From NCBI GenBank assembly GCA_965655095.1, contig OZ296649.1, positions 83,576,001-83,640,000 of the forward strand: a stretch of 64,000 nt of DNA, in the 5' to 3' direction. The translations under genes and the position numbers were made by a program. Source of the DNA: Haplodiscus bocki (Eukaryota). How positions within the stretch are numbered: position 1 is the first letter of the stretch; the number at the start of each line of letters is the position of its first letter. The notes beneath the pieces were generated by a model that saw only the letters and a list, made by a program, of their open reading frames with translations, was not told where the DNA came from and searched no databases. Shown here one piece after another: positions 12,900-34,521 of this stretch.

Positions 12900-15682
12900 T
12901 TTTTGACGTTCCTACAGTTAGCACATCCAGAGAGCAGACGCCATATACACGAATCTCTTTGGGTGATTTTAGGTTTGAAGTAAGTTTGGAACAGCTCGAG
13001 TAGTATTATCTTTTTATTGGTGTTCGAAAAAGATTTCCATTTTGAAATACTTTTTGCACATGTTCGACAATCAAGTTGCTAGTGATTTGATTTCTATTTG
13101 TACCAATCTCTGTGCTTTTTGCGGAGCTTTTCAAGTTAGTGTCCACTTTTCCGTTCATAATCTTTGCCAATAGCAAAATAACCTGGAGTTTTTGTTGTAG
13201 AGAGAGTGTCGGAATGCCAGTTTTCTGAACAAGTCCTTGTAGCTGATGAGTTTATGTTGAAGATCCACATTCCAGCCTTTATCTGAATAATTTCAAGCAC
13301 AAGAATAGTGGACTTGTTGGGTTTCCAAAGCGATGACTCGTACCTTAAGATGAGAACTACGTAGACAGCTGATGTAAGCGTTTCTATAATGAACGGAGTG
13401 GTGGCTGAGAGACTTTGCTTCAGAGAAAGCAAGGCATTGTGATGTCTACTAGCTCATTGTTTGGTATGGGCGCTCCATCAAAAGTCGTTAGGGACTATTT
13501 TACCAAAATCTTTGATACCCGTCGAAATTCCAAAAGTGAAATCAATCATTACCTATATAACACAACCTCAATATACTTTATTTTCGGTTAGGTTCATTGA
13601 CATTGGTTTTTCTGTACACCATTTTCAGTGTCTTTTAACGTCTATACCAAGAATAACTGGGTTGCTGCCAACATTTTTTGAAGTCATCTGCGTACCGGAT
13701 ACTCTTCTACATAACACGATCGCACAAATCATTTAGAAAAAAGTAAGAAGATAAGAGGCCCCAGTAAAGATCCTTGGGGTGCTCCACAGTGGACTTGTAG
13801 ACAACTGGACGTGGTATTCACAATTTTAACCGTTTGATATCTGCCCAAGAGGCAGTTTTCCAGCAGCTTTAGACTTAATTTTTGCACTTCTGGAAAACAA
13901 GGTGACTGACCTTGTCAAACGCTTTCTAGAAATCCACTTCTAATGATACCGAGTATTTACAACCGGGAGAGTCAAGACAAGTGAACACCCCGTGTTGATA
14001 CTCAACGAAGTTACTCCTTGCGGACTGTTGTCTTCGGAAGCCATGTTTAATCGGTGACAGGAGTCGGGACAGTGATGTATACAGTTTGTTGAGTTTTAGG
14101 TTTTCAAAAACTTTCAACAATTTGGAGAGAAGACTGATTGGTCGTGAGTTACAGATCAGTTGCCTATCTCCCTCTCTGATGATTGGCATTACCTCTGGTT
14201 TTTTTCAATTTTCAGCCAAATAGCAAATATCAGCATTTCTGTTGAAAATCAGGTCCAAATAAAACAATCAGAGACTCTGCTATGTTGCGTGGCAGCGCAT
14301 TGTCATTGCGGTTAGGACCTTTTGCTTTGTCGATGTCAAGGCTCAACAATCATCTCGTACTACAGATTGAGAGAAATGAATATTGTTTGTAAAAGTTTCG
14401 TTTTGGGTTCCGCAATCGGCTTGTTAGTCTGGACAGCTAGAGACGATCTGAAGAAGTTGGTTGAACAGCTCAACGTTTTCGCGTTTGCTTTCAGGTCTTC
14501 TTTCGTCAAGATTCTTTTCGCTGGGAATGGTGTCATTTTTCGGGATGCTGGTCAGAAACTTCTTCAGAGCTGGAAATCTCTCCTTGTTGCAAGAGTTCAG
14601 TTTCAAACTTTTGTTGGTGCTTTGATAGGGCAAATGATAGCTCCACTTGAGCGCATTCGATTTTCGCGAGGAACGAGGTCTTGGGATTTCTGCCATCTCT
14701 GGGCTAAAGGGCGCTCAACATCATGATTTGATGCGCGAATGAGGAAAAAACATGAAGCAGGTTCCAGACGGTGTTTGCTTTTCATGGGAACAAAATATTG
14801 CAATATTTCAAAGACCCAAGATTACCAAATATCAACAAACATCTATGTTGCTCACGCGGTAGGGTTTGAAAGGGTGTGCAATGATTAGCTTGTTTATCTC
14901 CGACCAATCCGGTTTTTGGAAGCAGAGTCTGGATAAGTCCTGGCGCTTCTCCGCATTTGCTGCTCTTTTGTCGACAGGGGTGATTTGTAGGCTCTTTTTA
15001 ACACTGTAAATCCATAAATCAGATGTGTGTGAACACTAAATCGGATTGTTAATGGAAACTGCAGCGGCTATTTGTGGCTAGTGGGACAGGATGATGTCAA
15101 GAGACCTCCCTGTTTCAGTTCTGATTTAATGTTCAAGATTCAGTGAAGCAAGTCCCTCAACGGAAACTTGCTCCTCGTGGCAACATGATGTTAAATTGTG
15201 CCACTCAGTGGAGACAAAATGATTTCCCCCGTCACCAATTTGACTTTAAATTTGAATTTGGCTTGTATCTTTTCCAAAAAAGAGACTTGACCGACCAGTT
15301 AGGTAACGGTACAACAAAAGGGGCTATTGCGCAGTGCGCTGCACATACCGCTTACAATGACAGGGTTTTTGGTTTAGATGCGAAAGAGAACACAGTCTAT
15401 AAAGTCGGATGCATTTTTTCAGGCGGGAATGATTTGGGTCACGGCAATTAGAGAACCGCCATGTTTTGTGTTTCCATTTTCGGTAGATCTATCTTTTCGA
15501 TAAATAGATCAGTTAGGCAGGAACAGGGCGGGGTTACTGATGTGCTCTATCAGCCACGCCTCTGTCAGACAAATGATTGCAAGATGCTTAGTTAAGACTT
15601 TATTGGAGAAGTTCAGTCTCGTTCGCTTTTCCAGTGGGCTTTCGATAATACGAACAAGGAAGTGGATTTTTATAGGTAGTCT
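12900..15682 (-). pseudogene. LINE-A ORF2 (apurinic endonuclease + reverse transcriptase), disrupted
   Basis: ORF fragments 15509-15721, 14424-14696 and 13926-14189 carry APE/RT motifs; many stops and frameshifts. Confidence 0.85.
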
Positions 15683-16553
15683 TTCGTCTTGGTCCTCGTG
15701 GGTTGCTTCCTCTGTCTTCACGGGGGACCATTTGTTCTAATTTTGGATTAGGAAGGCACAGGCACTCGAATGTTTTTTGTTTCCACTCCTTGACTGATTA
15801 ATTGCCATCTTCGAATGAGGGCTTTGTTTTTAAATTCAGGTTTTAAAATTGAAATCGCTCGGTTTTTAAACACACGTTGGCTGAAAGTCTTCAATTTGGT
15901 TGCGGACGATAGGAAAAGTCGTCGTTGCCACGAGGTTAGTTTTTTTGAGAACAATAGTGGCTGTTTTCTTGTCGTCATAATGTCTGAGTCTCACAATGAC
16001 AGTGAACGAAGTATCTACTTCAAGACGAACCAGCGCCTCTTTCGCTTCACAAACATCGTGTTTTTGAAGTTTTCTAATGCTTCTTTCTTTTGACGCAGGT
16101 TTTCCACGTTTTCTGACTCCGTTTATTTTTTCAGTCAGAGCATTTTGTTTTGCTCCTCGTGCTTCACAAGTGGTTTTACGGACGGTGCTGGGAGTTTTCT
16201 TGATAACAAGTTTTAGACTTAAATTGCTTTTACGGATCATTTTCTTCATATCAGTCACTTCCGTTTCGAAACTCTTCGTCGGCTTGCGTTCCTTTCCGCT
16301 TTCAGCTAAAATGTTAAGACTCTGATGGTGCATTTTTCTCACGCAGTCACTGCAGAGAAGTGCATTTTGGCCAAACACTTGAAAACCCATAAAAAAGCAA
16401 CTCAGGCAGACAAGTACAGTATTCTGAGAGCTGCACTGAGCAGATACAGGCAACACACTTGAAAGTGTTTTCTTGTTTCTTTAGTTTTCCGAGGCATGTT
16501 TTGCAACAATCGCCAATCAGCTTGATGCTGGACCTTCTGCCATGACTTTCCAT
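15683..16553 (-). pseudogene. LINE-A ORF1 with N-terminal PHD-type zinc finger, frameshifted
   Basis: CCKTC...FKCVAC...EYCTCL...ALLCSDC aligns with LINE-B ORF1 CKTC...FCCVGC...HLTTEC...MLMCNTC. Confidence 0.75.
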
Positions 16554-26239: not shown

Positions 26240-28008
26240 TTTAATTTGATCTCCGTCGAAGATTATTGAACCAAAAGGAAGAAAAATATAGTTTGCTCAC
26301 GCGACTCGCTTTTAAGGGGGTCTCTGTTGAACAATACTGCTAGAACTTCTGTGGCTTCTGATGCAAAGAATCCACAAAAAATCCATAGTATCGAAAAAGT
26401 GCTTGACTTTTCCCTCAGAAACAAACGATTTGTGCTGAGTTGGTGCAAAAGTAGGTGGGCGAGCCCGGAAAGTTTCAGTTACTCTAATTCAAGCTGGAAT
26501 GCACTACTTTCTTAAAGCACGGTCAATTTTGTAGCCGAAGGAAGAACTTTTAATTACACGAGCTCTATCTAAAATTAAAGATCTCGAAACTGAAGGGACG
26601 GTTCTGAAAAGAGGTTTTGATATCATTGAACTCGGTACACCAGAAAAAAATGAATATCGAAAAGTTGAGATTCTAGGTTTGTGGATTGGTTTTTCAATTG
26701 CATTGACAAGAAACGATTGTTTGTATCTATTAAGAGTTTTTAATCCTGCTCAATTCAAAAACAAATTCCTTGCAACCAATCCATCTCAAGAAGTGGCTAT
26801 GTACTTCGTTTCTCCAAAGCATAGTTGATTTAAAAAAGTTTGGGAAGTTGTTCAATGGACAATTTTTTTCAATAGACAATCTCCATGCAATTCTGTCCCG
26901 GGCAAATTGGGCTGGGAGTAGTTGCATTTTTCTCGAGAAAGACTGCGATACAGTTGTGGTACAGCACCATCTCAGCCGTATTGCGTTCGATAAGATATCT
27001 TTTTGACATTGCATAAATCCTAGCATTACCGGTTTACCATTTGAAGGATATGTATGATCACTTGGGTGCTCATTTAAAAGGTGAAAAATCAGCTTCTGGA
27101 GGGTCCCCCAGATGAACTGTTGGTTTAATTCGAATGTAATTTTGTGTACCACATCTGAGAAAATGCATCTTTCTTTCTGTCTTGTAATGTCACTGATTTT
27201 AGATTGTGGATCTGGTAGCCTTGGTGGCATTGTTTGCCATTTAAAACCAGTCCCAACTAAAAACGGTTTGAAGTGACTGAGGCAGAACTGACTAGAGTCA
27301 ATGGACGATGTCTGGTTGCTCATCCATAGAGCTTTACACAAAAAACTTGGTTGCTTCAATGTTCCCGACGACAATAGGATTAACTTTTCTGTAGAGTAGA
27401 CTCGACAACATCGGAATCTCTCCAATTCTTACTTCAAAGTGGTCTTTTTAGAGTTTTACATAGACCAACCCAAAAAAAATGGGCAAAACACATGAGCTGG
27501 TTTCAAATTTTTTTCCTCAGAAAAAACTTGTGGAGCTTTCGGATCATTTCCTTAGATCCCTGGTTTTTGAAGTCGTTAAACCACATCATCTTAGTAAAAA
27601 ATTGAAACATTGTCTACTTTTCGTGAATCTAGGTAATGTTGCTTTTTTGAAGGATTTTTTGTCTCATTTATTCTCTTTCTTTAAAACTGATGCCTGTTTT
27701 TTTAATGGCTGGAAAGTTTCGAGAAGCCCAATATACGGTCCATTTTTGGAAACTGTATAAACAGCACATTGCTATCACCAGATAAAACCAGATTCAGTGT
27801 CCTGTATTTCAGATAATGAGAAAAAAATCGGCTCGGATTGATTCGATTCCACTAGATACCATACAACTGTTGTTTTTTATGGGTTGCAGTGAAATTAACT
27901 GGAGTTTGAATAACGGTCACAAACCTTTGAAGTTCATAACGTTCACAAACCCTTATTAAATAGTTTTTCAGTTTACTGCATGTCAGAGGCAGCAGTTGTG
28001 GCCTCTTA

Positions 28009-28580
28009 ATGGTTTATATTCTCGGAGGAAGCTGTCTTCATCACGCGATCGAAGCCTGGAAACGGTGTAAACGACGACATCTATTCGATTCGAACATTAT
28101 TGCAATCCCTGGACTGCATTTAAATCGACAGAGCAGAGCCCAGCACAAACTCGTCCAGGTAATCCAAAACGAAGTCTCAGCAGACGAAGGTTTTATTTTG
28201 TGGCACGACGCCATAAATAACTCCATCGGGAAGCACCCAGTCGACCCACGTCCCCCCTGTCCCCTGAAGAACTGGGATCAGAACTCAAAAACCTTAAAGG
28301 TCTGTGCGGCATCGTCTACTGTCAGCGGTCGGGTACCGAAAATATCTACAGCTACCTGGAAGTAACCGGTATCCCAGTCCTCAATCTTCTGAAAGATCTC
28401 CTTTCGAAGCGGAAGCAGAAAGACCAGAAGCTACTCGCGAAATACCAGGAACTCCATCAAGACTACAGACTTGAAATAAAATCCCTTACGTTCCTGAGAA
28501 GTTACGGTGGTGATATCCGTCTGATCAGAAGCAAGAGACAGCGACTCTCCAAAACCAGAAGAGACAAAGGACTCAAGTGA
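28009..28580 (+). pseudogene. LINE-B ORF0, SGNH-hydrolase/esterase-like (~190 aa, one frameshift near 28260)
   Basis: YILGGS / AIPGL / WHDAINNSI; after the shift GIVYCQRSGT...KYQELHQ...GLK*. Order of S, G, N, H blocks resembles SGNH proteins (inference). Confidence 0.65.
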
Positions 28581-28676
28581 GGCTAAGGTAAATAGTTTCC
28601 TTCCTTGTTTCTCCCAGCCTTTTTTTACTGGTGTCTAGGATTAATTTCCCGGGCTGAGGTAAAAGAAACTACAATC

Positions 28677-29588
28677 ATGGTGAGAAAATGCAAGACGTGT
28701 AAAAACAACATTGCTGCCTCGGATAAAACCTTTTGTTGCGTGGGCTGCAACCAGCACATGCATCTTACCACCGAATGCACAGCTTTCTCAAACGTTGCCA
28801 TCAACGGAATCAAGGAACTCGGTAACAATTGCATGCTCATGTGCAACACTTGTCTTGACAATGGAGAACGAGACGTGTTTATTAGATGCAGAGCACAAAC
28901 GAAGGTCGAGTCCGTAATCTCAGACTTGAAAATCGATGAAAAGCTCTCCAATCTGGAAAACAAGTTCTCCGAACTTGTCGACTCGAAACTTGCAAATCTA
29001 ATTTCGAAGTCATGTGACAAAATTGAACAAAACTATGCTAAAGTGACAGCCAAAACGCTCGAGAAAGCTGCCTCCGTGGTAACTTTCTCAAACTCCAAAA
29101 CAAAAGTGAAATCTGAAGATCTCAACATCTCAGCAAGCTTCAGAATACAAGGGATCGCTGAAGATCCCGAGAAAACTGTCCATGAGAATCTTGTCCCAAC
29201 CACCGAAAAAGTCAAAAATATCCTACAATCCTTCAATGTCAATACCGAAATCACTTCAATGAAGCGACTTGGAAAATTTGACAAAACAAGAATCAAACCA
29301 AGGACCCTTCTTGTTACGGTCCGGAATGAGTACGATAAGAAGCTAATCATGGCGAAGAGCGTGGAAAACCGCGAAGTCTTGACGGAGGAGTCCATCTACT
29401 TCCTTCCTGCATTATCAAAGGCTGACGTCATCAAAGAGAATCAAGTGCTGAAAAAGAAAAGAGAACTTCTCGATGAAGGCGTTCCTCGTGAGAAACTAAA
29501 AATTCGCAACTTTGAATTATTCAATGATGGTAAAAAGGTAGCGATGGATGCAACCGAGCTCCCCCCCAAGGAGCAAAGTTCATTTTGA
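28677..29588 (+). CDS. LINE-B ORF1 protein (PHD finger, coiled coil, RRM-like C-terminal region)
   Basis: MVRKCKTC...CCVGCNQHMHLTTEC...LMCNTC; RIQGIAE, KRLGK, KPRTLLVT motifs typical of CR1/L2/Jockey-group ORF1. Open throughout; ATG at 28677. Confidence 0.88.
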   Translation: MVRKCKTCKNNIAASDKTFCCVGCNQHMHLTTECTAFSNVAINGIKELGNNCMLMCNTCLDNGERDVFIRCRAQTKVESVISDLKIDEKLSNLENKFSELVDSKLANLISKSCDKIEQNYAKVTAKTLEKAASVVTFSNSKTKVKSEDLNISASFRIQGIAEDPEKTVHENLVPTTEKVKNILQSFNVNTEITSMKRLGKFDKTRIKPRTLLVTVRNEYDKKLIMAKSVENREVLTEESIYFLPALSKADVIKENQVLKKKRELLDEGVPREKLKIRNFELFNDGKKVAMDATELPPKEQSSF

Positions 29589-32440
29589 CTAGACAATGTA
29601 AGTGTACTACTTTTAAACGCTCGAAGTCTCCTAAACTACGAACGTAGACTCAAACTCAGAAACGCCATTCTTGTTCAAAAGTATAACAATCTGTATCGCT
29701 GAAAGCTGGCTCACTTCAGACATTAACTCGGCGGAGCTCGTCATGAGTGACTTCACCATCTATCGGGCAGACAGACCCTCTACATCCGGCAAACCCTCCC
29801 TCATGGTGGTGTGCTCATCGCCATCAGGAACACTTACTTTTGTGAAGTCACTTTTGCCAATCTCCCCGAATGTTGCCTTCAATGCACAATAAGGATTTCA
29901 GGAGAAGACATTGTGATAAGGGTCTTCTACTCGCCCCCACATGGTAGCCCATACAGATACTCCATAGACGATTTCGTAAATCTGATCAGGGGAACCCCAA
30001 AAGGGAAACCAGTCATAATCTGTGGTGACATCAATTTCCCCGACACAAACTGGGAAACTCGAACCAGCACCGACTCATTCGAACAAGCTGTGATTGACTT
30101 ACTCGATGACCTAATGTATGATCAGTCGATTAATTTTCCCACCTGTGGCTCGCGAACTCTTGATATTGCCTTTTTCTCCAACTGCACCGTAACAGCTGCG
30201 GTAGACGAGAACTTCAATCTTTACAACTGCTCAGATCACCTTGCCATCAGACTGACAATTGAGAGACTGACTTGTTCTGAGAAGATCTTCATAGAAAACT
30301 TCAGAAGCTTCGGGTCAGCCGACTTCAGCAGCCTGCGTGACCACCTCTGCCGGAACCCATTTTCCCCCACTTGTTTTTCCAACATCGACAACACGTGCCT
30401 TGAACTATACCAACATTTTGATCGAGCCATTGACATGTTCGTCCCAACCCGGACGAGACATCGCCAGAGTTTGCCCCCCTGGATAACCTCCGAATCTTCT
30501 CATCTGTTGAAGAAAATGCAAACCCAGAAAAGGTTACTAGCAGCTAAACCTACCAGCTACAGGCGGAACAAAATAGTCGAACTAAAGAACCTAGTTTCCA
30601 AGTCATGTGAAGAAGACAGAGTTCATTACCAGGAGAAACTGTTCAACACGCGCGACACTGGTAGAATTTTCAAGCATTCAAAGTGTCTCAAAAAGACAGC
30701 CAGTCTTCCGTTATCAATGCAATTCAGAAATGAAAGTACTCAAAGTGCCTTCAGAAAAGCGGAAATGTTCAACGATTACTTCCATTCAGTCTTCGCTCCA
30801 AAGGTGGACTACAACTTGAACAACATCCCAGTGAGCAATGTTTCCCTAACAATTTTTAGCATCTCAAAAGCCAAATTACGGAGCATTATCTCTGATCTTG
30901 ACGTAAACAAAACGCGAGGCCCAAATGGCTATCCGCCTTCCTTCTTTGTTAATTCTGGTGAAGGTATGATTCATGCTCTTCATCTCTTGCTCAAAAATAT
31001 AAAAAGATTGCGAAAGATTCCCAAATGCTGGAAGCGCGCTGTTGTTTCGCCCATTCATAAGAAGGGCGAAAATTTCCTCCTGGAAAACTATAGACCAATA
31101 TCACTGCTAGATATTGACAGCAAAATTCTAGAAAAATGCATGTATTCGCCTCTACGAGCACTTTGTTACCTCCCTGAGCTCACGCCAACATGGTTTCGTT
31201 CGCCAGAAATCGACAATAACGAACATGCTCGCTTTCCTCCAAGCTGTCTACAAAGCCCTCGATAAGGATCAACACAGTGATGTCGTAGCTTTTTACACAG
31301 ATTTCAGTAAGGCTTTCGACAAAGTATCCCATTACCTTCTGTTGTGCAAAGTAGCAAGTCTAGGCGTAAATGGTTGTTTGCTCGAACTTCTCCATGATTA
31401 TCTTTCCGACCGAAAGCAATTGTGCGCGTTGACAACGTCAGCTCTCGGCCAAAGGACGTAACTAGCGGTGTCCCCCAAGGGTCCCTCTTGGGACCACTTC
31501 TGTTCTGTATTTTTATAAATGACCTCCCAGAAGCCCTAGCTTTCAGCTACTCATACCTTTTTGCAGATGACCTCAAATTTCTTTCCGTAAACCTAACAGA
31601 ACTCCAAGTGCAAACCGATCTTCAATCACTTGAAAAATGGGTAAATAAGAATCGAATGGCCCTAGCAACAGACAAATGTGCTAAACTGACATTCCGAGGG
31701 AAGGACACAATTTTCAAACTCTTCGGAGAACCCCTGAAAACCGTAGCCAACGTAAGAGATTTAGGCATTACGTTGACCAGCGATCTCACGTGGAACATGC
31801 ACATATCAAAAAAAGTAGCGAAAGCAAACGGTGTTCTCTACTTACTAAGAAGAAATGTCTCAATCTGTAGGTGCTCGAATCAAACTCCTCGGACTCTATA
31901 AATCCCTAGTCTTACCCATTCTTCTCTATGGTATCCAGTGCATTCACCTGTCAAAAGCGTCAATGATCATTCTGGAAAAACTCCAGAAAAGAGCCGTTAA
32001 GTGGATATGCGGAACAGGAAAATATGGACAACAACTTCGCTTTCTGAACATTCTGCCGTTGCCTATGCACATCCAAATTTTGAACCTGCTTACCTTGTCA
32101 AACTTTCGTACCAATTTTTGTACCAGCAACCCCTAAACTGTGACTCTTTTACAGAGTCAAACTGCGCCCTCAAGAAGCAAAGAAGTCTTTTAGCTTCCCA
32201 AAACTAGAACTGAAAAAGGGAGGAACGAATTCGTGTTCAGAACTTCCCGTCTGGCAAACAGAGTAAATCAACACGCAAACTTCGAGGAACCTGTTGGACT
32301 GAAAAGACGTCTGATCAAGCTATTTTGGAGGGTCGTGGAAGCTACCTACGACGAACTCAACTCCTGCACCTGGCTGATTGCGTGCGATTGCCAGAACTGC
32401 AGGGGAAAGTGGACAATTTTCTACACTCAACTCGGGATCA
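29589..32440 (+). pseudogene. LINE-B ORF2 (APE endonuclease + RT), several frameshifts
   Basis: LLLNARS, ICIAESWL, CGDINFP, SDHLAI, NYRPISLL, YTDFSKAFDKV, SGVPQGSLLGPLLF, FADDLK, C-terminal CTWLIACDCQNCR. Confidence 0.93.
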
Positions 32441-34521
32441 AACTCCCCTCAGTTTACTGTAAAGCCTCAACAACAACAACAATAAAGGGTTCAGCAATAC
32501 CTTTTGCAGTTGAAATGAGCACACTCGGAACAATGAGAGGAAAATTCCAGATTGACACAGCTTGTACCGACTTCGTTGGCGAGCAATTCCTGCCAATTTG
32601 AAAAACAGTGGATATTTTCCAACGTGTACGTCCGATTTAGATATTGAAGATGTGGGAGTTTTGGCGTCACGAAGTTTTTGATCTGGACCTGTCCAGATAC
32701 CCGGATATCTCCTTCCTGCAGACTCAAGTAAATTAGTTGTGAACCTCTTGTACTTATTGCGCCTTTTTCTCTCAACCACTTGCTTTCCTTACAGTTGGAA
32801 GCAGATGTATACCGAACCACTACGCAAATAGATAAGCTGGATACTGAAAGCTATTGACCACCTGTGACAAGCTCTTCTAAACATCTCTCAGCTTCGGAAG
32901 TCTAAGTTTCTAGAAATTCGAGCCGATTTCAAAGTCACATGAATCAACATGGTACCTTAAAAAACCATCCATTTCAGTACTACTCCTGGTTTTAATGAGG
33001 CTCCTACAGGCTGAGTTTGAAAGCATAGAAGGGATGTACCAATTTCATGTTGACTTCCCAAAGTCTTTTGACGTAGCGTCATATCATCTGTCGGGAAAAT
33101 GACGAAAATTTTGTATTTGGAGTTCCTTGCTAGAGCCAATAAGCGCTTACCTACGCGCTAGATAACAAATGGTAGTATTCATTGGAATTCCTTCTGATTT
33201 TAATCTTACCAAGTGCAATGCCAGAGAGGTCGATTTTATGTCCACTCCTGTTTTTGATTGTTAATAACCTATTTGACAGTTTTCTGTACAAATTCTGAAG
33301 TTCTCTTCCTTGCTGATTGTAAAATCATCTTGTAAAATGGTGTGTTGATTCTTCATGATTTAGATAAAACTGCAATCTTTATTGAAAATCAATATGTTTC
33401 TGGTTTTTTTCGATAAGTCCGGGTGTAAAAGATCAGAAAATCAACCAATAATCGTATTCGGAGATGAGGATATTCATCTTCTTTTCGAGCCTTTGAAAGA
33501 CATTGGCGTATTTTTTTGTCTCAACGATGTCATCATCATGAACTTTTTTGATTCAGAAACTCTTTCAAGAGGTATATAGTCTTTTGAACGTGAAGAAAAA
33601 TTTAGCAGTTTTTTTTGTCTCCGAGACAGAAATCCATATTGTGAAACGTAGGTCCGTCGCGTCCTATTGTGGCGATTGCAGAAAAGCTTTTCCAACAAAA
33701 CAAATATTGAAAGGCTTGAAATTTTACAAAGTTGGGCGACAAAATTTATTTCGTACAAAAATGAGTAGAAAGAAGGCCTGTATTCTGCATTGTTATTTTC
33801 CGCCGTAATATATTACGAAAGGATTATCAACTCAAAATGTAGACTTTTTCTCCAGTGATTTGCCAATCTGGTTGTGTCAACTGTGAAACTTTCCAAAAGA
33901 ATTTTCCGCTATAAATGTTCCCCTGGACACGACACGTAGAATGTAATTTTGAGATTACCAGTTTTTGTCTAAAACTTTACTTACTGAGCTAAGAGCGAGC
34001 CTCATCACACCGTAGGCTGTCTAGTTTGTCCGGAAATTTTCATTTTTGAGCATTTTCTGACCCACCGTCGATGGAAAATATCGCAACTCAACTGCGCCTC
34101 TTGTCACCCATTTCTCAGCTCACCCATTTTTCAGCTCTATGATGTGCTTTTCCTGTACTTCATTCTGAATTTCAACATTGTGTTGAAAGTCAGATTTGTT
34201 TAGTGTCGATGGAAACCATTCGAAAGAACACGACATTCGTCTATCATCAATATCTTTCACAGAATCCAATAAATCGACTCCAAACGACCGAAATCTTTTC
34301 CTTCTCAAGAGTCATAAAATGGGGAATTATGTGAATCTCAATAGCGATATCGATTTCACACGAGAAAAGCCTTCGACCACGATTCGAAGTTTTTATGGGA
34401 ATATTTTTGAAATTTCTGCAATCGAGATACTATTTTTTCTTGAAAATAAATGTCACATTTCAATGATTCATTTCAAATCCTTGTCGGTTTGTGTGTAAGG
34501 TTTGTTCCAGAACAAAATGAA

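Follow-up and report, generated by a model that had tools for sequence, protein, structure and literature searches.

A conserved in-frame UGA-CUAG stop between ORF1 and ORF2 points to translation of the endonuclease/reverse transcriptase by readthrough in a clade of LINEs

It has long been an open question how the second open reading frame (ORF2) of a long interspersed nuclear element (LINE) is translated, given that the RNA is bicistronic. Reviews of LINE protein biogenesis, reinitiation, and recoding list reinitiation, internal ribosome entry sites, stop-start coupling, frameshifting, and 2A sequences, and stop-codon readthrough is absent from these lists (PMC5009743, PMC5972666, PMC3894237). 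UGA_CUAG is a documented readthrough-prone stop signal, with efficiencies of 1.5-17% in human genes that may not hold in the present host; exchange of CUAG for CUAC more than halved the readthrough (PMC9841425). Here, we analyzed a LINE in a stretch of 64,000 nucleotides from Haplodiscus bocki (assembly GCA_965655095.1, contig OZ296649.1, positions 83,576,001 to 83,640,000 of the forward strand), in the following termed the window. According to the original prediction, which was made from the letters of the window, ORF1 of this element ends with UGA-CUAG, a readthrough context, and ORF2 is translated by readthrough of this stop. The description of UGA-CUAG as such a context is borne out by the published measurements (PMC9841425). 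Based on a comparison of the element with its copies and relatives, we consider the formation of an ORF1-ORF2 fusion through programmed UGA-CUAG readthrough to be the best explanation of the junction, and a probable one.

The argument relies on the following features of the window:

27953-32482, + strand: LINE copy of a young family, full-length but decayed, 4.53 kb with a (CAA)n 3′ tail (blastn against the family copy L031)
28677-29585, + strand: ORF1, 303 codons with the ATG at 28677; a zinc-finger-like Cys/His region at the N-terminus and a long C-terminal region behind it (from the translation)
29586-29588, + strand: TGA stop of ORF1, the proposed leaky stop, present in 29 of 30 family copies, five of five lineages, and 76 of 79 diverged genome matches
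29589-29592, + strand: CTAG, the 3′ stop context (Leu codon CTA and the G of the next codon), invariant in five lineages
29589-32425, + strand: ORF2 for an apurinic/apyrimidinic endonuclease (APE) and a reverse transcriptase (RT), broken in the window copy and 947 codons long in intact copies

Inspection of the window letters confirmed that ORF1 ends with TGA at 29586-29588 and that CTA GAC AAT continues in the same frame into the start of the APE domain. The sequence behind the TGA, CTA GAC AAT GTA AGT GTA CTA CTT TTA AAC GCT CGA AGT CTC, reads LDNVSVLLLNARSL in translation. The spacer between the two ORFs thus amounts to 0 nt, and this family has neither the inter-ORF spacer nor the ORF2 initiation codon of the L1 type. 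The predicted in-frame start of the APE domain is present, but ORF2 of the window copy is only a remnant and is intact only in other copies. The window copy has decayed into a pseudogene: the endonuclease frame is broken by the loss of 2 nt after 29687 and of 1 nt after 29798, the RT region contains more breaks, and the ORF2 stop is lost.

In the intact copy L031, ORF1 (303 codons), the TGA, and 947 open codons ending with TAA lie in one frame. Its ORF2 product matches PF03372 (Exo_endo_phos) and PF14529 at residues 10-222 and PF00078 (RVT_1) at residues 491-721, the APE match beginning at residue 10 after the stop. The first methionine after the stop is residue 53, which is located beyond Asn10 (in LLLNARS) and Glu39 (in ITESW). 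In the L1 endonuclease, their counterparts are the catalytic residues N14 and E43. Since Met53 is downstream of both, initiation at this position would yield a protein devoid of two catalytic residues. In this family, neither an AUG nor a near-cognate start codon occurs among the first 20 codons behind the stop.

To read the junction in further copies, a 601-base junction probe was compared with the 1.5-Gb genome, which revealed at least 40 copies at 95-98% identity. Among the 30 copies that were read at the junction, TGA is present in 29 and CTAG in 27; the conservation of TGA-CTA(G) across genomic copies was the check that the original prediction had proposed. A natural family copy with TGG in place of TGA is represented by protein P0010 (10 member sequences), called as a single ORF1-APE fusion protein of 604 residues. 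The APE domain was also used to scan metagenomes, from which only two copies were recovered, both of the present family.

A protein search with ORF2 yielded relatives ranging from 95% down to approximately 23% identity, and the DNA of twelve of them was examined. In four relatives, ORF1, TGA, CTA G, and the APE domain were all found in one frame:

L051 (protein P0004): ORF2 54% identical to that of the present family
L052 (protein P0005): ORF2 46% identical
L060 (protein P0009): ORF2 45% identical
L053 (protein P0011): ORF2 33% identical

Their ORF1s are homologous to ORF1 of the present family at 28-60% identity. Together with that family they constitute five TGA-CTAG lineages, whose ORF2 products share 30-54% identity. 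The junction DNA of L051, L052, and L053 has no match in this genome, and that of L060 has a match of 76-79% beginning at the TGA; we therefore conclude that the four relatives come from other hosts. A back-translated pattern search of the genome for an L060-like junction gave no match. Two additional relatives were discarded as junction informants, P0017 because its contig starts inside the APE domain and P0007 because it is a 5′-truncated copy.

We aligned the junctions of the five lineages without gaps, anchored at the stop codon. All seven columns of TGACTAG are identical in five of five lineages, and the 36 columns before and 38 columns after this block agree in only two to four of five. 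The original prediction had named a variable post-stop context as one result that would contradict it; we found an invariant CTAG instead. Among all Leu codons of these ORFs, CTA has a share of just 18%. The residue following the leucine is D, G, D, E, and G in the five lineages, and its codon always starts with G. Counting three independent extra lineages and probabilities of 1/3, 0.18, and about 0.27, the chance identity of TGACTAG is estimated to be on the order of 10^-6. In the window, TGACTAG occurs eight times (4.5 expected), and an APE motif follows at the 29586 site alone. The seven other sites were rejected as signals and are regarded as chance matches, with no APE motif behind them. 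The arrangement at 29586 is more than chance, because the APE domain follows this site only and because four diverged lineages have TGACTAG at the homologous junction as well.

The codons directly behind the stop provided information on whether they are translated. In L051 and L060, eight codons separate the UGA from the first ATG. Four of these codons (five bases) differ between the two lineages, all of the differences are synonymous, and both sequences encode LGFLNILQ. Further downstream, synonymous and non-synonymous changes are mixed. Codons 1-8 are therefore translated and under selection at the protein level, which counts against initiation at the ATG. The first ATG after the stop is codon 9, 9, 9, 30, and 53 in the five lineages, and its position relative to the Asn differs. 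Thus, no ATG ahead of the Asn motif is conserved across the lineages, and ORF2 stays in the frame of ORF1 in the intact copies as well as in diverged families; the opposite outcome on either point would have spoken against the original prediction.

The diverged families of the same genome were examined with residues 215-400 of P0010 as the query, a segment that spans the junction. It produced 79 junction-crossing matches at 40-53% identity, of which 76 have a TGA, one has no stop, and two have TAA only. Many of these matches belong to open frames of 1252, 1254, 1257, 1261, or 1282 codons with exactly one TGA. For L031, the same measure gives 1301 codons, which equals 353 + 1 + 947, and the measure therefore reads through the stop. 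It follows from the long frames with a single TGA that at least five further families keep ORF1, TGA, and ORF2 in one frame. In intact copies among these diverged matches, the stop is never exchanged for a sense codon.

The original prediction had also relied on a second element of the window:

15440-15736, - strand: remains of the junction from an older and diverged LINE ('LINE-A'), with AGA CTA where TGA CTA is expected

AGA CTA is indeed located at 15682-15677 (- strand), in frame with the APE remnant, whose N-terminus was recovered by tblastn at 15634-15440. The position and frame claimed for it are thus literally true, but they prove nothing by themselves. The copy is old and its translation is full of stops, and an argument drawn from a single decayed copy is weak. 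Among the relatives of LINE-A in the genome whose matches span the junction, most carry one TGA within the match. This count does not fix the exact TGA position, but it fits an interpretation of the LINE-A AGA as a mutated TGA.

To place the junctions in an evolutionary context, we calculated a quick maximum-likelihood tree of 34 ORF2 proteins, from which a single well-supported node was used. The five TGA-CTAG lineages form one clade with long internal branches (SH-aLRT, a likelihood-ratio branch support, of 100), which also includes P0006 and P0007, two proteins whose junctions are unread. Neighboring elements are organized differently. In L056, L057/L058, and L059, ORF2 overlaps ORF1 in another frame (-1/+2), and L065 has a 320-nt spacer with an ATG between the ORFs. 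In the proteins P0012, P0015, P0021, P0028, and P0033, the APE domain is directly preceded by an N-terminal leader ending with an NPGP 2A motif. A D(V/I)ExNPGP motif before the APE domain is absent in all five TGA-CTAG lineages. Thus, the in-frame leaky stop appears as a derived, long-kept character of one clade. The LINE is likely of the CR1/L2-like APE type, a name that rests on its architecture and on neighbors resembling published 2A-bearing CR1 elements (PMC3894237). We slightly favor a broader view, in which an ancient CR1-like clade would make its APE/RT only as a fusion via UGA-CUAG readthrough and the junction would have been switched during evolution among readthrough, 2A skipping, overlapping frames, and an AUG-containing spacer. 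As a separate observation in this group, an ORF of 570 residues with a 2OG-Fe(II) oxygenase domain (PF13532) was found at L063:255-1967, 278 nt ahead of a 2A-LINE ORF.

In mechanistic terms, programmed readthrough would proceed as follows. Most ribosomes translating ORF1 would stop at the UGA and release ORF1p. In a minority of ribosomes, the UGA would be decoded by a near-cognate tRNA, UGA-CUAG being a weak termination signal. These ribosomes would proceed into the endonuclease/reverse transcriptase and yield an ORF1-ORF2 fusion, similar to Gag-Pol of gammaretroviruses, and the ratio of ORF1p to ORF2p would be set by the leakiness of the stop. A linear UGA-CUAG signal can act alone, without an RNA structure. 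We infer that the ribosomes cross the stop by readthrough and not by another recoding event or by initiation; a readthrough efficiency suited to this task and a role of the fusion as the active form are suggested in the same manner. Programmed readthrough, as put forward in the original prediction, is the explanation best supported by the comparative sequence evidence, and the fusion would be its product.

Several observations weigh against this interpretation. Three of the five lineages possess an AUG at codon 9, at a distance of exactly 24 nt from the stop, which represents a possible reinitiation site. The efficiencies measured for UGA-CUAG come from human genes, not from the host group of these LINEs. 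Folding of the 103 nt from the stop onward revealed neither a consistent stimulatory structure nor one of unusual stability in the five lineages (z = +0.98, -2.47, +0.10, -1.03, and +1.11). The DNA-level check covers five lineages only, two of which (L051 and L060) have closely similar APE N-termini. CTAG was read in these five lineages only, and the other families of the genome were scored for TGA only. Moreover, a search of sequencing runs revealed no run on record as RNA that holds the element, and the literature searched contained no report of an ORF1-ORF2 fusion protein of a LINE. In the folding calculations, the structures predicted for three lineages (L031:3506-3608, minus strand; L052:1303-1405; L053:1009-1111) include a hairpin that begins 18-19 nt downstream of the first stop-codon base, with energies no better than those of shuffled sequences.

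Among the alternatives, ORF2 might be translated by termination-reinitiation or by AUG-independent initiation right after the ORF1 stop, with ORF1p and ORF2p as separate proteins. Human L1 has been reported to translate ORF2 in an AUG-independent, termination-linked manner, and SART1 to use stop-start coupling (PMC5972666, PMC5009743, PMC3894237). The AUG at codon 9 in three lineages would suit such a process, and if initiation took place at the codon following the stop, the protein-level constraint on codons 1-8 would be accounted for as well. However, reinitiation leaves the invariant UGA and CUA-G unexplained amid their diverged surroundings, and ahead of the catalytic Asn and Glu the present family offers neither an AUG nor a near-cognate codon. 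The upstream 36 nt are devoid of a conserved block, and UGGGA, which resembles a termination upstream ribosome-binding site (TURBS), is found within the upstream 120 nt in one of the five lineages. In addition, reinitiation after an ORF as long as ORF1 has been judged improbable (PMC3894237). We regard this route as unlikely.

Two other explanations appear far less probable. The UGA could be removed or redefined by A-to-I editing to UGG, selenocysteine insertion, or splicing, or UGA could be a sense codon in the host. The genomic TGG copy behind P0010 demonstrates that Trp is compatible with the open frame. The DNA-like contigs of four runs, however, list no variant at the seven junction bases. 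For selenocysteine, neither a selenocysteine insertion sequence (SECIS) nor any other Rfam match was detected at E ≤ 1 in four elements (L031, L051, L052, and L053). A reassigned code is at odds with the absence of any further in-frame TGA from both ORFs of the five lineages (~1250 codons) and with the ORF2 stops, which are TAA in three lineages, TAG in one, and TGA in L052; UGA is therefore a stop in these hosts. Editing would have to act on the A of UGA-C, which has a 5′ G and lies in no predicted duplex, and an A in this setting is a poor ADAR site. CTAG was rejected as a splice acceptor, no pyrimidine tract preceding it in L052, L053, and L060. Just as remote is the idea that the TGA-bearing copies are ORF1-only passengers mobilized in trans by other LINEs and that their ORF2 is untranslated. 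It would be in line with the broken state of most copies and with the coexistence of many LINE families in the genome. Against it, ORF2 is open and retains its APE and RT Pfam domains across lineages of 30-54% identity, always behind the same stop, and many copies of the 45%-identity family contain fully open frames of 1252 codons. The maintenance of ORF2 behind the stop therefore indicates selection on ORF2 translated from TGA-bearing elements.

Apart from the junction, the window copy is 98% identical to L031 over 4542 bases, and the similarity in blastn stops at 27953 and 32482. The 3′ end consists of a short (CAA)n tandem-repeat tail instead of poly(A). The family copies L033 and L038 are 5′-truncated. 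A further ORF of approximately 190-200 codons (ORF0) is situated upstream of ORF1 in another frame (28009-28365 in the window; L031:4612-5217, minus strand) and has no Pfam match at E ≤ 0.05. CR1/L2-like LINEs characteristically have a PHD-type zinc finger in ORF1, joined in some members by an esterase. ORF1 of the present family did not match a Pfam family, though a Cys/His pattern is visible at its N-terminus. In the sister lineage L065, ORF1 (L065:430-1488) comprises a PHD finger (7e-9) and, at the C-terminus, a 'Baculovirus FP protein domain 2' (PF25298, E = 3e-17). One additional feature was recorded close to the ORF1 stop:

29561-29567, + strand: C7 homopolymer within ORF1, located 18 nt ahead of its stop, a hotspot of length variation

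This tract measures 7 nt in 22 of the 30 family copies and 5, 6, 9, 9, 11, 11, 14, and 17 nt in the remaining eight, each of which has a shifted ORF1 frame. Regularly spaced copies were observed at two places in the genome, with four copies of the present family ~3836 bp apart (G000:C3:24303458-24315568) and four copies of the 45%-identity family ~15.6 kb apart (G000:C2:147391217-147438660). Both arrays are more suggestive of tandem or segmental duplication than of independent insertions.

If readthrough is confirmed, the element would be the first LINE known with an ORF1-ORF2 fusion, a Gag-Pol strategy that we have not found described for non-LTR (long terminal repeat) retrotransposons. The annotation of ATG-less LINE ORF2 genes in invertebrate genomes would change, and the switching of the junction would represent a natural experiment on how LINEs set the ratio of ORF1p to ORF2p. 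With comparative evidence pointing to one defined seven-nucleotide recoding signal, the question of ORF2 translation becomes directly testable. We did not find a report of readthrough for a LINE in the literature, but most subscription journals were outside the search, so that an earlier description is possible. For some plant LINEs of the L1-like type, stops in frame between the two ORFs may already have been described.

Among the described systems, mammalian L1 shares the bicistronic LINE RNA and an ORF2 expression that depends on ORF1-translating ribosomes and is possible without an ORF2 AUG (PMC5009743, PMC5972666). It differs by a 63-nt spacer and an ORF2 AUG (PMC5972666), whereas the present junction combines 0 nt, a common frame, and an invariant stop context with the lack of an early AUG in its own family. 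In SART1, which uses UAAUG coupling, ORF1 and ORF2 likewise abut without an intergenic region (PMC3894237). There, stop and start overlap in different frames and a downstream structure is involved; here, the stop is not accompanied by an AUG and the frames are identical. The APE-type LINEs with 2A/StopGo sequences (CR1, Ingi/L1Tc) also tune the output of ORF2p by recoding at the APE/RT N-terminus (PMC3708506, PMC3894237), and the 2A-bearing lineages are close phylogenetic neighbors of the TGA-CTAG clade. The 2A sequence gives rise to separate proteins from one ORF, in contrast to a fusion by readthrough, and no NPGP follows the stop in the TGA-CTAG clade.

The gammaretroviruses of the murine leukemia virus (MuLV) type and some LTR retrotransposons resemble the present LINE in that a structural or RNA-binding protein and a polymerase share one frame with a single stop between them, leaky in those elements and proposed to be so here. 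MuLV uses a UAG stop with a downstream pseudoknot, and a protease releases Pol. The present LINE, a non-LTR retrotransposon, instead has UGA with a linear CUAG, no consistent structure, and no encoded protease. As in the MuLV type, a minority fusion product would set the stoichiometry. The cellular and alphaviral UGA-CUA(G) signals, such as those of OPRL1 and AQP4, contain the identical UGA_CUAG, and the G at position +7, conserved here, is functionally important in reporters (PMC9841425). In those cases, readthrough leads to short C-terminal extensions or a viral polymerase, whereas the sequence behind the stop of the LINE encodes a 947-residue endonuclease/reverse transcriptase of a mobile element.

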